From: Schizochytrium sp. TIO01
Taxonomy: Eukaryota; Protista; Bigyra: Labyrinthulomycetes
Length of the DNA stretch: 64,000 nucleotides
NCBI GenBank assembly: GCA_004764695.1
Contig: SMSO01000019.1
Coordinates: 1 to 64,000, forward strand
Direction of reading: 5' to 3'
Shown here piece after piece: positions 14,071 through 28,032 of this stretch. The notes under the pieces are model-generated. The model was given only the letters and a program-made list of their open reading frames with translations, was not told the DNA's origin and ran no database searches. The number at the start of each line of letters is the position of its first letter. Positions within the stretch are counted from its first letter, which is position 1. The translations under genes and the position numbers were made by a program.

Positions 14071-16759
14071 TTATTCCAATTTAAAATTTGCGCCAACAAT
14101 ATCTGGTGTTAGCAAAGGTGATAATAAGTCTTTCAGAACGAGTCGAAGATTTCTATCCTGAGTTCTTGCATTCCAGTACTCACGCAGACGTTCTGCGCGG
14201 AGCAACTGCCACGCCTCACGAACCTGCTCAAATGAATCAGCGAAATGTAGATCTTGCCCAAGTCTTCTTGAACAGGTTCTCACATGAGCATGACAAGCAT
14301 CTGCATCCTGAGAACTATAGCCAAGACACCAAGCGCAGAAGTGATGACCACAAGCACGATTAATACACTCTACAGCACAGCAATCCTCGAAATCGTCCAC
14401 ATAAGCGTTACAATTCGGACAACATGTGCTCAAGATCTTCTCTTGAATATGAAGTAAATGCCGCTGTGCGTCACTGTTTTGTTCATCTGTACGTAAAACT
14501 TGTGCTATGCGCCTTTGAATCTCTTTCTCCGCCCAAACTGCTGCTTCGTTTTCTGCCTTCATCTTCGCAATCAACAAAAGATGATTCAAAGCTGTTGGTG
14601 CAAGACGGGTAATTTCTTGACCTGATATCCTTCCACTACATTCAGGTTTCATGCATGCCATCGTCCCATCAGCATCTACTATTACGTTAGCAAGTGGCCG
14701 TGCCGCCTTTTCTACTGCAAGTTCGATACAGCCTCTGCAAAGGAAGTCCCCCTCCTCGCAGCTCGTGCCCTCGGAAAGAAGATGCTCCTCCATGCATACT
14801 AGACATATCTTGACAGGGATCTGAGGAGCTCCAAAAGCTTCATGTTGGAGTGCTTGACGCGCGGTTGGACGTTGACCAGGGTCTGTTGCTGTAAGAGCAT
14901 CGATAAGTTTCTGCATTGCAGCGGTTCGCTCAGTAGGATACAGCTCCTTTAAGCTTATGCCTACAGAGTACATGTCCATCGCTGTTTCAAACCTATCTAC
15001 AGGCCCATTCTGCAACTCGGGGGCAACGTACCGTGGCGTTGCCTGAAGTGACGTGTAAGTTGCAGTGTAGTCTGCATTCTTGATGCCGTCAAAGTCGCCG
15101 ATCAATGGTGTCCCGTTGCTTGTGAGAAAAATGTTTTCTGGTTTGATGTCACAATGCACAATGCCGTGGGTATGTAAATCCGCCACACCGATAAGCAGGC
15201 CAACAGCAAGTCGATCACGCGCTGCTTTGCCTTCGTTAGGATGACTCTCAATCCACTTGGCAAGGTCACCTTGCTCGTAAAAAGGCATGACGATACAGCC
15301 ACGCGGTACTCCATGTGCCAGATCAACAAAAGCACCATTGATACGTATCACGTGCTGAGACACCACTTTGCCCAGATTGGCAACTTGTCTGTAGAAGGTT
15401 TTGGATTGACTTGAATGTCCAAGCTGAAACTCTTTGAGAACCATAGTTTTACCATCTCCATCAAACACTTTCTGGACTCTCTTGCCAACTCTGGAAGCAA
15501 GGGGCTCGCCGAGAGGCTTGAAGTCCGCGACTGTGACATTCGTCAACCAAAGGTCAGAACATGCTACTTCAAAGACACCCTCTGCACTTACGTGAAGCCT
15601 TTCCAGCCAGGCGCTATCTTGCAGTAACTCTGGATAATGCTTCTGTGCATGTTGCAGAGTTTCAGCAAGCTTATGACGAAAAGCTTTGCTAAGCTCGATA
15701 GGGTTGCCTTCAGAAAGAACGAGCTTTTGTTTCTTGATACGATTTCGAAAATATTCTTGATCTTTCTCATCCAAGTCCTCTGCTTCGAGTACTTCTCTAG
15801 ATCTCTTTAAACTCTCTGTCGCTTTTCTCGAATTGCCAAGTTTTTGGTATAATGCTTCCACATCTGAGACAGAAGGTTCTTTCAAACCCAGTACTGCATA
15901 GTCATATAGTTCGAAGAGCTCTTTTGGTGTGCACTTGCTCGCATCATTCAACGCAGAGCTTTCAGAGTATCCTTCAAATCGAGCAAATGTTGAACTTATC
16001 GCGCAAAGTATTTTGGACAAGTGGGCACGAAGCGTATCTCCTTGTAGCGCTTCAATCTCTTCTTGAAAAGCACGTTCAAGTTCAGACAACTCAGGCTCTA
16101 GCTCCGTGGCCTGCTCAGGTGTCTTCAGTGCAACCAATAATCCATCACCAAGCTCTAGCTCAGTCAGACGCCCGATGACACGTTTTACAGCTTCTTGGCT
16201 TCGTTCGCCAATGTCGTTTGCTCGGGGTTCTCCACTCCTTTTGTACCCTTCCACGAATTTGACAGCCTGAACAGCAAGTTCTTGGCAATATATGAAGTCA
16301 TTTGTGCTTGTCTCTTCATCGACTGGTGCAAGGTTGATCTTTAGATCGTTTACCAAACTTTCGACTCTCAATTTGAATTCTCGCACTGCACTCTCATCAC
16401 TTTCGCAAAAGTTGCCGCGAACCCATGGGTGCACAACCTGCAAAAGTGAATGCAGGTGCCTCCGTTCGGCGTTTCGCTTTTCGATGAGGCTGGGCAAGCC
16501 ATTTGCAGAGCTTGCACGAATCTGGTCTTGTAGCGCGTCAAGACACTGTTTGGAGTTCTTGATGTCAGCGAAAACCTGTCGCAACTTCACTTGGCCAAAG
16601 TAGCCCTGGATCGCCGGTTGAACAAATTCCTCAAGCAAGGCAATCCCAGTCTGCAGCGAGTTTCCTCTGACCCCGCCTTGGTCCGCGCGCAAGTCCGAGA
16701 CTTTCTTGGCAAGCTGCACCACATCAGCGAAACTCACGCTCGCTCCATCCGGCCGTTCT
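14071..16759 (-). CDS. Terminal exon of gene A: helical region, Ser/Thr-type kinase domain, RING1, Rcat/IBR-like domain
   Basis: MVLK, HCDIKPEN, DFDG, YVAPE, DMYSVG, RPTA kinase motifs; CLVC..C...CRGC..CMKPEC RING; CPNC..DCCAVEC....CGHHFCAWC. Confidence 0.9.
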
Positions 16760-26500: not shown

Positions 26501-28032
26501 GTAATGTATTGCTTGCCATCATTCAATCAAATCGACAGTCTTCAATGGAACTATATCGGCTACGAGGGCGCCAAGGCAGTGGCTGCGGCGCTGAAAGAGA
26601 ACCGGTCGCTGACATCACTATCGTAAGTTGTCTACGCAACACCGCAGCTCGTGGACTTGTTTGTACATGATGCTTGGTTTGTTGTTTGGTGGGTGGGTTG
26701 GTGTTGTATTGCAAGTTTATGCAATCGCTTGTTTGTTAGATGGATGGATGAGTTGTCTGTTTGAGTGAGTATACATCCATCGAACAAAGAGCAAAATGAC
26801 AACACAACAAAGATAAATGCTGAAAGCCAACCTAGCTCACTCACGTCCATGCATGCATGTGTGCTTCTATTGTAATATGTAACGTGTAATGTATTGCTTG
26901 CCATCATTCAATCAAATTGACAGTCTTTATGGCAACTTTATCTTCTCAGAGGGCGCCAAGGCAGTGGCTGCGGCGCTGAAAGAGAACCGGTCGCTGACAT
27001 CACTATCGTAAGTTGTCTACGCAACACCGCAGCTCGTGGACTTGTTTGTACATGATGCTTGGTTTGTTGTTTGATGGGTGGGTCGGTGTTGTTTTGCAAG
27101 TTTATGCAATGGCTTCTTTGTTTGTTTGTTTGATGGATGGATGGATGGATGGATGGATAAGTTGTCTGTTTGAGTGAATATACATCCATCGAACAAAGAG
27201 CAAAATGACAACACAACAAAGATAAATCCTGAAAACCAACCTAGATTACTCACGGCCATGCATGCATGCGTGCATCTATTGTAATATGTAATGTGTAATG
27301 TATTGCTTGCCATCATTCAATCAAATCGACAGTCTTTCGGGCAACCGCATCGGCTCAGAGGGCGCCAAGGCAGTGGCTGCGGCGCTGAAAGAGAACCGGT
27401 CGCTGACATCACTATCGTAAGTTGTCTTCGTAACACCGTAGTTTATGGACTCGTTTGTACACGAGGCTTGGTTAGTTGGTTGGTTCGTTGCTTCGTGGGT
27501 TGTCTAGTGTGTTATTTTGCCGATGTCTTTCTTCGGGCCATTGCAAGTTTGTTGTGGAATTGAATGTTTGGTTGAGTGTGGATCTAACAGAGAGCATGAT
27601 AACATCAGAGAATAAATGAAACTGTACTGGCAGTACTGTGGGTACCTTTTAATGACGTGAAATTGTAAACTAACGAACGGAGTTGATGTCATTTGGTTTT
27701 TACTGATCCTTAGAATGTCCGATTGGATAATGAATGAAATGTACAAGGAGCTCGAATTGAATAAGCAAATTTGTTCTGCAAAGACAAGAAGGACAAGTCT
27801 TATACAGATATCTCGTGAGCTTCGTTGTATACATGTTGTAAACGATGCACTTTCTCTGCCGTTTTCAGTGCAGCATAGTATTCTTACACAAGCTTGGCCT
27901 GCGAACAGGTCTGGTATGCCGAGTTCAAAAGAGGACTATATTGCTGCGCAGAAAGTAGAGCTTGAATTGCTGGAAGCTGCAAACGTTGCCTTTCATGCAA
28001 CATTGGGCTGTCTAGGCCCTTACATATTGTAA
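23415..28032 (+). CDS. Gene C: spliced LRR(10) protein with ~105-aa C-terminal tail, ~407 aa, 12 exons
   Basis: Exons: 23415-23479 ([21 protein letters not shown]); 84-nt LRR exons starting 23835, 24222, 24606, 24992, 25377, 25763, 26154, 26539, 26924, 27333 (consensus [28 protein letters not shown]); terminal 27714-28032 after tactgatccttag, in frame with track ORF 27715-28032. Donors GTAAGT, all phase 2, 1224 nt, no stops. Confidence 0.8.
23501..23652 (+). repeat. Microsatellites (TGCT)10, (GTTT)n, (GATG)n in intron 1 of gene C
   Basis: Directly visible at 23501-23540, ~23593-23612 and ~23613-23652. Confidence 0.9.
23550..27440 (+). repeat. Tandem exon-intron array C, 10 LRR exons, period 384-409 bp
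   Basis: Near-identical units with acceptor AT(C/T)(G/A)ACAG, donor GTAAGT, internal (GATG)n, (ATGC)n and ggtgggtgggttgg tracts. Intron sequence is unrelated to arrays A/B. Confidence 0.95.

Follow-up and report, generated by a model that had tools for sequence, protein, structure and literature searches.

Are the long tandem repeats that flank the ribosomal RNA genes (rDNA) of Schizochytrium sp. TIO01 non-coding spacers, or do they belong to genes? We addressed this question in positions 1–64,000 of contig SMSO01000019.1 (assembly GCA_004764695.1; 64 Mb in 37 contigs), a 64,000-nucleotide stretch, hereafter the window, at the start of this 74-kb contig (C18). Tandem Repeats Finder called three long-period arrays in the window: array 1 at 17306–21353 (452 bp × 9.1), array 2 at 23649–27484 (385 bp × 9.9) and array 3 at 53773–61998 (431 bp × 19.1), which we also call arrays A, B and C after the genes described below. 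Similar repeats of Aurantiochytrium limacinum, the LORE-TEARS, were described as spacers without database similarity (Collier et al., bioRxiv 10.1101/2023.06.15.545109), in a preprint that makes no mention of leucine-rich repeats (LRRs), kinases or coding potential. A first-pass annotation of the window, made from the sequence, proposed that each repeat unit carries one LRR exon of a hidden receptor gene. Our analysis indicates that, with high probability, each of the three arrays encodes the LRRs of an expressed nuclear gene (A, B or C), the genes belonging to two families.

The window contains 40 LRR exons, ten in array 1 on the minus strand, ten in array 2 on the plus strand and twenty in array 3 on the minus strand, and an nhmmer exon model recovered exactly those 40. 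Each repeat unit consists of one 84-nt exon and an intron of about 300–370 nt. All 40 exons are preceded by AG, followed by GTAAGT or GTACGT, and free of stop codons, and their phase is identical (1 nt, 27 codons and 2 nt). The claim that every exon is intact and of phase 2-2 was therefore correct. The proposed unit of AG, 84 nt and GT stands in its borders for 40 of 40 exons and in its length for 39; the remaining exon (59716–59802) measures 87 nt through an in-frame extra AAC. Chance open frames were rejected as an explanation: the coding frame is open in all 40 exons, compared with 9 and 13 for the other two frames, and 240 of 262 related exons elsewhere in the genome are intact.

The product of each exon is a 28-residue peptide, L-x-x-N-x-I-G-x-E-G-A-K-A-V-A-x-A-L-x-x-x-x-x-L-x-x-L-x, and all 40 peptides fit the ribonuclease inhibitor (RI)-type LRR pattern (28–29 residues, LxxLxLxxNxL/I-g-xxGaxxLaxaL). 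Three exons queried singly matched Pfam LRR_6 (PF13516) at E 2e-4 to 1e-3, among them one from gene B at E 2e-4 and one from gene A at E 1e-3, each under the 23.4-bit cut-off because a single exon covers only model positions 10–24. The intron always falls after the second base of a codon, and thus any number of units keeps the frame. The first base of each LRR exon is T, so that the split codon is never a stop.

We verified the reading frames of the three gene models exon by exon, by phase arithmetic, and made domain searches on single exons. All junctions are in phase 2: the ATG exons of A, B and C each end with 2 nt, in the phase of the LRR exons, and each terminal acceptor enters the frame of the long open reading frame (ORF) that follows. 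The first-pass annotation had predicted this in-frame joining to an ATG exon and a terminal exon, and the junction coordinates that it gave are right.

Gene A (minus strand, 1257 codons in total) begins with an exon at 21505–21557 that comprises 17 codons and 2 nt, with its ATG at 21555–21557 and the donor GTAAGT. Ten LRR exons of 84 nt follow within 17271–21348 (at 21265, 20829, 20373, 19921, 19469, 19032, 18589, 18162, 17712 and 17271), separated by introns of 343–372 nt. A linker exon at 16909–17100 (192 nt: 1 nt, 63 codons and 2 nt) leads to the terminal exon at 14071–16759, with 895 codons and a stop. Its 888-amino-acid (aa) ORF divides into a helical region (residues ~1–395), a kinase (~400–640; 14818–15540) and a Cys-rich module (14074–14820).

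Gene C (minus strand, 1539 codons) has the same layout: a first exon at 62171–62223 (ATG at 62221–62223; 17 codons and 2 nt), 20 LRR exons within 53738–61993 (19 of 84 nt and the one of 87 nt), a 195-nt linker exon at 53375–53569 (1 nt, codons and 2 nt) and a terminal exon at 50530–53218 in the order helical, kinase, Cys-rich, whose protein is 86% identical to that of gene A. Gene B (plus strand, 407 codons) starts with an exon at 23415–23479 (ATG at 23415; 21 codons and 2 nt), runs through ten 84-nt LRR exons within 23835–27416 with introns of about 300 nt that are unrelated to those of A and C, and passes the acceptor at 27713/27714 into a terminal exon at 27714–28032 that encodes a 105-aa helical tail and a stop. 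The kinase-type genes are therefore the first and third, and the tail-type gene is the second; the earlier assignment of the kinase to A and B and of a short tail to C is wrong if its letters follow the order of the arrays.

Genes A and B stand head to head around a 5S rRNA gene (22822–22940, minus strand; Rfam RF00001, 96.5 bits), which lies within a 1.86-kb region common to the two, and the cassette occurs again on the opposite side of the rDNA. Outside the window, a second tail-type gene (C18: 64424–69670, plus strand) forms a head-to-head pair with gene C, and the 5S rRNA gene at 63481–63599 (minus strand) lies between them.

Are the predicted borders used? We compared region 14071–17800 with Logan contigs from three transcriptome-sized runs of three studies (X1, X3 and X11; 20–37 million letters) and from one genome-sized run (X15; 62.5 million letters), for all of which contig depth is a weak measure. 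Contigs of X1 and X11, and partly of X3, connect 16760 with 16909, 17100 with 17271-9, and 17354 with 17712-24, in agreement with the spliced joints predicted at 16759/16909, 17100/17271 and 17354/17712, at the level of the family and in RNA-like runs. Where letters are replaced at these joints, there are always exactly 12 or 22 of them, as expected from the hypervariable codons: 12 letters cover the last variable codons of the upstream exon, and 22 letters extend over the first 10 bases of the downstream exon as well. Such contigs therefore derive from other exon pairs of the family that have the same splice borders. Contigs of the transcriptome-sized runs also contain go-backs of 66–82 nt, that is, one LRR exon joined to another, and one X1 contig coincides exactly with 16909–17100 and then departs from the genomic sequence. 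X15 has none of the joints: it goes back only by the length of the genomic unit (421 and 453 nt), with contigs that span the exon borders. Intron bins hold almost nothing in X1, X3 and X11, unlike in X15. Because the joints occur in X1, X11 and X3 and are absent from X15, the predicted borders serve as splice sites in the family, which is a family-level result and not proof for the gene A copy itself.

We then considered the rest of the genome. The kinase-type terminal exon occurs at 51 or more genomic places (at least 51; 59–91% identity), 44 of them stop-free over ~888 codons, and the tail exon has 99 genomic matches (33–100% identity), ~93 of them stop-free. Upstream of kinase exons at 20 further loci lie 262 LRR exons. 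Broken exons, which the first-pass annotation had named as the sign that would speak against its reading if frequent genome-wide, are the minority there, with 240 of 262 intact. Intact exons outside the window have 84 nt, rarely 72, 78, 87, 96 or 99 nt. Tail-type arrays are head to head with kinase-type arrays at 6 of the 20 loci, and most family members lie near rDNA places.

Two individual loci deserve description. At C30:5473291–5483290, about 7150–8090 in gene orientation, two LRR exons of 99 nt carry an in-frame G-rich insert in the variable loop, so that the peptide reads LGGWGLGC or LGGGGLGC ahead of N-K-I-G. At C7:1068134–1078133, 12 exons contain 1–2-nt indels or stops and the 888-codon terminal exon is still open; this is either a decaying copy or the result of unpolished long-read errors within a repeat.

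The published description allows the arrays to be compared with individual classes of LORE-TEARS. Group 0 consists of ~9 units of ~385 bp between 5S and 18S genes, and group 5 of ~421-bp units, typically 5, between two 5S genes (bioRxiv 10.1101/2023.06.15.545109). Array B (385 bp × 9.9, between 5S and 18S) is like group 0, and array C (431 bp, between two 5S genes) is like group 5. The statement in the first-pass annotation that such repeats had been published as spacers flanking rDNA is thus accurate, with agreement in unit size, copy number and position as given in the published description. The systems differ in that the arrays here are exon–intron arrays of spliced genes, and in that array C has 19 units compared with the typical 5. 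The annotation had extended the LRR interpretation to the rDNA-flanking spacers as such, and this holds for groups 0 and 5 and fails for the telomere-side repeats that we examined. At another chromosome end, a 371-bp repeat (C7:666–4996, × 11.7) and a 532-bp repeat (C7:11508–12550, × 2.0), which resemble published groups 2 and 3, gave no LRR-exon signal. We therefore rejected the idea that all rDNA-flanking repeat classes are LRR arrays and limit the LRR-gene reading to groups 0 and 5.

These data bear directly on the published view, in which the arrays would be non-coding spacers for chromosome-end or rDNA maintenance and the exon-like parts leftovers of old genes. That view has behind it the original description as spacers without database similarity, the strong homogenisation of the introns, the decay of one array and the telomere-side classes that lack LRR exons. 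It is contradicted by the splice joints and by the introns missing from the RNA-like contigs. Moreover, splice sites, an open frame and a length unchanged modulo 3 are retained by all 40 exons of the window and by 240 of the 262 found elsewhere, whereas the introns gather indels (10–19% of columns, compared with 0–3% in exons), and the 888-codon and 105-codon exons stay open at 59–91% and 33–100% identity, respectively. We consider the spacer explanation highly improbable.

What do the terminal exons of these genes encode? The kinase of the long terminal exon matches Pfam Pkinase (PF00069) at E 2e-29 (103 bits, where the cut-off is 31.7), and an AF2 model built from 20 aligned sequences (pLDDT 75) contains a kinase fold at residues 399–635 (VIA Z 23.9; Foldseek E 3e-10). 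K435, D530, N535 and D548, the catalytic Lys, Asp, Asn and DFx Asp, are invariant in the 20 sequences. The HRD motif reads HCD, making this a non-RD kinase, DFG reads DFD, GxGxxG is absent, and the αC position is a Gln. Among solved structures, the kinase domain of Leishmania TKUL matches best by sequence (E 3e-18). Like Leishmania mexicana TKUL (PDB 9gmp), in which the kinase controls the activity of a HECT ligase, the terminal exon has a non-RD loop (HGD in TKUL) and a kinase fused to a putative ubiquitin ligase-like part; unlike it, it has no HECT domain and follows an LRR array, and the kinship is confined to the kinase domain.

The ~395 residues before the kinase are helical in the AF2 model. 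At default sensitivity, Pfam returned no match for this region, the linker exon, the tail or the Cys-rich module, and Atlas returned none for the helical region. A profile of the helical region found 16 proteins among 1.84 billion representatives, and the identified ones are thraustochytrids. Fold searches with the whole model gave kinase matches alone. The effector was rejected as a ROCO or NLR protein, since Pfam finds no ROC or COR and only kinase families in the terminal exon; likewise, it found no NACHT or NB-ARC in any exon searched.

The last 249 residues form a putative zinc module with two Cys clusters, in which 16 Cys/His are invariant across 20 paralogues and relatives. The first cluster (residues 645–700) has seven invariant Cys (C-x2-C ... 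C-x6-C-x2-C ... C-x4-C), compared with the eight zinc ligands of a RING1, and no conserved His. The second aligns without gaps over 35 residues to the RING2/Rcat of HHARI (1wd2) at a sub-threshold profile E of 0.013, placing the invariant C786 (888-aa ORF numbering) at the catalytic position of the HHARI Rcat, and it also aligns to the RING of RNF4 (E 0.0012). Among 18 paralogues, weak matches were to IBR_2 in 7 and to zf-RING_2 in 5 (best E 0.0011), and all Atlas language-model look-alikes of the module that have a family name are RBR/IBR clusters (0.90–0.92). Residues 706–769, between the clusters, are predicted to be helical and contain zero Cys; no IBR domain was found there, and this helical segment argues that none exists. 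Compared with the RING-between-RING (RBR) ligases HHARI/ARIH1, parkin and RNF216, the module has a second Cys cluster of sub-threshold likeness to RING2/Rcat, with a Cys at the position that is catalytic in HHARI; it differs from them in having only sub-threshold matches, no IBR and a first cluster of seven Cys without a conserved His. With the look of a RING1 and a catalytic RING2 (Rcat) but no IBR, it appears to be a RING/Rcat-like module outside the RBR family, probably a non-canonical ubiquitin-ligase-like one. The kinase and RBR-like effector proposed in the first-pass annotation accordingly stands as a Pfam-supported kinase (E 2e-29); its RBR part is non-canonical, with no IBR and with RING matches under threshold.

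The terminal exon has no hydrophobic segment at the level of a transmembrane helix, and no signal-peptide-like N-terminus was seen, in line with the earlier claim that the proteins lack both. The 105-aa tail of the other gene family is modelled by AF2 as a helical hairpin (pLDDT 75), for which Foldseek gave no match, and it has no detectable homology to the kinase-type terminal exon. Our guess is that it is an adaptor or oligomerisation module.

A transcript-derived protein displays the full architecture. P0044, a complete 1240-aa ORF of a transcript from MMETSP0960, a sample that we take to be A. limacinum, contains 28-aa LRR_6 repeats (E 5e-34), the helical region, the kinase and the C-terminal module. 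Over its terminal exon it is 99% identical to this genome, the match starting at residue 328, exactly at the end of its last LRR. Homology of the C-terminal module, measured on its cluster mate P0036, reaches hhalign E 7e-61 at 41% identity. From its architecture, a transcript-derived protein of this species joins RI-type LRRs to the effector module. The MMETSP0960 header of another cluster mate, P0045, gives taxid 87120, the fungus Rhizopogon burlinghamii, and the taxid of A. limacinum is 87102, which points to an error in the metadata, probably a transposed digit.

More distant relatives carry a different sensor. In Hondaea fermentalgiana, P0031, P0033, P0035 and P0037 have the helical–kinase module behind ankyrin repeats and are annotated only as ankyrin or kinase proteins; P0035, where tested, also carries the Cys-rich module. 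The ankyrin–kinase proteins of Hondaea (e.g. GBG34857.1) and P0044 resemble the window genes in their kinase and in their helical region, the latter at E 1e-10 to 1e-19. The C-terminal Cys-rich module, which at least GBG34857.1 among the Hondaea proteins has too, matches at hhalign E 2e-35 to 7e-61, and the Hondaea members mostly differ by ankyrin repeats in place of the LRRs. These Hondaea and MMETSP0960 relatives are 36–43% identical to the window genes. Judged by homology, the sensor repeats of the wider group can be LRR or ankyrin.

How the arrays vary offers a clue to what they do. Within-array nucleotide diversity is higher in exons (0.116–0.144) than in introns (0.036–0.056). Variation in the exons is limited to the split codon and to codons 2, 3, 5, 8, 25 and 26, which correspond to the x positions of LxxLxLxxNxIG, and the same pattern is found in 271 intact 84-nt exons at 21 loci. 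In LRR proteins, these x positions make up the exposed face of the β-strand, a strand that the intron position here splits in two. The framework codons are conserved, with nonsynonymous diversity (pN) of 0.03–0.045 and, in array C, a synonymous diversity (pS) of 0.126 against a pN of 0.033. The introns of A and C are related (80% identity) and those of B are not; despite the unrelated introns, the exons of array B keep the peptide framework and design of array A, with eight synonymous codon differences. Change is thus concentrated on the predicted binding face, short of formally proven positive selection. The last variable codons of array C fall into five recurring cassettes (QT+S/D, SQ+G, TY+I, ER+H and QQ+T), and these 3' cassettes pair with differing 5' variable codons, a sign that blocks may have been duplicated or exchanged between units.

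One explanation of this pattern accepts the genes as real and assigns them to housekeeping or regulation. As in F-box-LRR or LRRK-type proteins, the RI-type LRRs would be adaptor surfaces through which cellular substrates reach the kinase/ubiquitin-ligase module. The tail-type genes would have a regulatory part, and the diversity would reflect relaxed constraint and repeated duplication in recombination-prone subtelomeres. The closest solved kinase, the regulatory kinase domain of TKUL with its cell-biological role, fits such a function, as do the ankyrin repeats before the same module in Hondaea and a whole-exon pN/pS near 1. Relaxed constraint sits poorly, however, with framework codons that are kept (pN 0.03–0.045) while change falls almost entirely on predicted ligand-contact positions, and with more than 150 mostly intact copies. 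We rate housekeeping scaffolds as possible but rather unlikely.

The alternative that we favour is a receptor function. In the subtelomeric surroundings of the rDNA, gene conversion and unequal crossing-over would expand, contract and homogenise the arrays, and selection would maintain the diversity of the binding face. The proteins would be cytosolic and would bind variable ligands on the concave face of the LRRs, and kinase-type members may answer by phosphorylation, perhaps also by ubiquitin transfer. As the likeliest function of such a design we tentatively propose the recognition of viruses or other forms of non-self. Mirusviruses are carried persistently by Aurantiochytrium. A wider model, which we hold with considerable doubt, is that the subtelomeric rDNA neighbourhood may generate the diversity of a cytosolic immune repertoire encoded in the germline. 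This repertoire would number well over 100 paired genes, each pair an LRR-kinase-ubiquitin-ligase 'executor' head to head with an LRR-only 'partner'; their one-LRR exon cassettes, which keep the frame, would be expanded, swapped and homogenised by the recombination that also keeps rDNA uniform, and their targets would be mirusviruses or other invaders.

The non-self in question might instead be other cells of the species, the gene pairs serving self/non-self or mating-type-like allorecognition between conspecifics. A hypervariable binding face, many paralogues, a subtelomeric place and unlike partners arranged head to head are features that this would share, but no signal peptide or membrane segment was found, so that the proteins would make no direct contact with the surface of another cell. 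Allorecognition therefore strikes us as improbable.

Several points weigh against the reading of the arrays as parts of expressed receptor genes. X1, X3 and X11 are RNA only by our guess and consist of Logan contigs, and many of the joints carry letters of paralogous exons; the read test, furthermore, covers the 3' end of gene A (14071–17800). One of 21 kinase-linked arrays outside the window is decayed (C7:1068134–1078133, 8 of 20 exons intact), and some copies may therefore be pseudogenes. Simple pN/pS over whole exons is near 1 (0.7–1.5), a type of measure that gene conversion confounds. DFD replaces DFG in the kinase, which is also devoid of a glycine loop, and the zinc module matches RING and IBR models only below family thresholds. 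Taken together, the exon observation of the first-pass annotation is confirmed, its gene reading is strongly supported, and its immune-receptor role is a reasonable but tentative proposal.

The remaining features of the window place the genes within an rDNA region. A single unit of 18S-5.8S-28S rRNA genes (31742–37281, plus strand) has the two gene cassettes on its flanks, and tRNA-Leu, tRNA-His and tRNA-Arg genes (38164–39251) lie just 3' of the 28S gene. Directly after the 28S gene, Tandem Repeats Finder called no long-period array in the window, unlike the typical published chromosome end. A third 5S rRNA gene (47227–47345, minus strand) has no LRR gene pair directly around it and lies 3.2 kb past the 3' end of gene C. 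Near the start of the window, an ORF of 1165 codons (5271–8768, minus strand; GC 0.55) spans three tandem-repeat blocks (81-nt; 36/69/105-nt periods) and has no match in Pfam. Across the genome, many contigs end in rDNA, and rDNA also occurs at internal sites with the appearance of joined chromosome ends.

How do these genes compare with other LRR repertoires? Arrays with one LRR per exon and phase-2 introns are already known from brown algae and Tetrahymena. The Ectocarpus precedent invoked in the first-pass annotation is real: brown-algal LRR-ROCO genes carry one LRR per 72-nt exon with phase-2 introns and are candidate immune receptors (Zambounis et al. 2012, PMC3341825; PMC11378527). The genes described here share with them the uniform exon length, the phase-2 introns, the variation at solvent-exposed LRR positions, the presence of LRR-only genes alongside, the lack of a membrane anchor and a stramenopile host. 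They differ in that the brown-algal repeats are 72-nt, 24-residue plant-type LRRs joined to a ROC-COR GTPase, whereas these are 84-nt, 28-residue RI-type LRRs followed by the helical region, the non-RD kinase and the RING/Rcat-like module, in long arrays whose introns are uniform enough to score as satellites. A further precedent named in the first-pass annotation, 28-aa RI-like LRRs on 84-nt exons in vertebrate NOD2/NLRC3-type genes, found no useful source in a literature search.

The Tetrahymena LRR arrays consist of equal-length tandem exons with more than 96% phase-2 introns and a junction codon common to neighbours; their young copies lie in subtelomeric and pericentromeric DNA, with unequal crossing-over and an association with LINEs (2019, PMC6564038). 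Equal exon length, phase-2 introns, the shared junction codon and subtelomeric copies recur here; exons of 90 nt and 30 residues are replaced by exons of 84 nt, and the rDNA/5S neighbourhood and the kinase–zinc-finger effector are different. NLR/STAND receptors stand further apart, as no NACHT or NB-ARC was found in the exons searched and the domain beside the LRRs is helical and unassigned. The present system is hence distinguished by its repeat type (28-residue RI-type, 84 nt), by its effector, by LRR-only genes that form pairs around 5S genes and by its place beside chromosome-end rDNA.

If the gene reading holds, as we think very likely, two of the five published spacer classes are the bodies of expressed genes, which ordinary ORF and repeat tracks miss. 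Thraustochytrids would then be a third protist lineage with a repertoire of single-LRR phase-2 exons, here with a new output module and with LRR-only partners head to head. The organism is culturable and has a telomere-to-telomere assembly and persistent mirusviruses, and the question of immunity is thus directly testable there.

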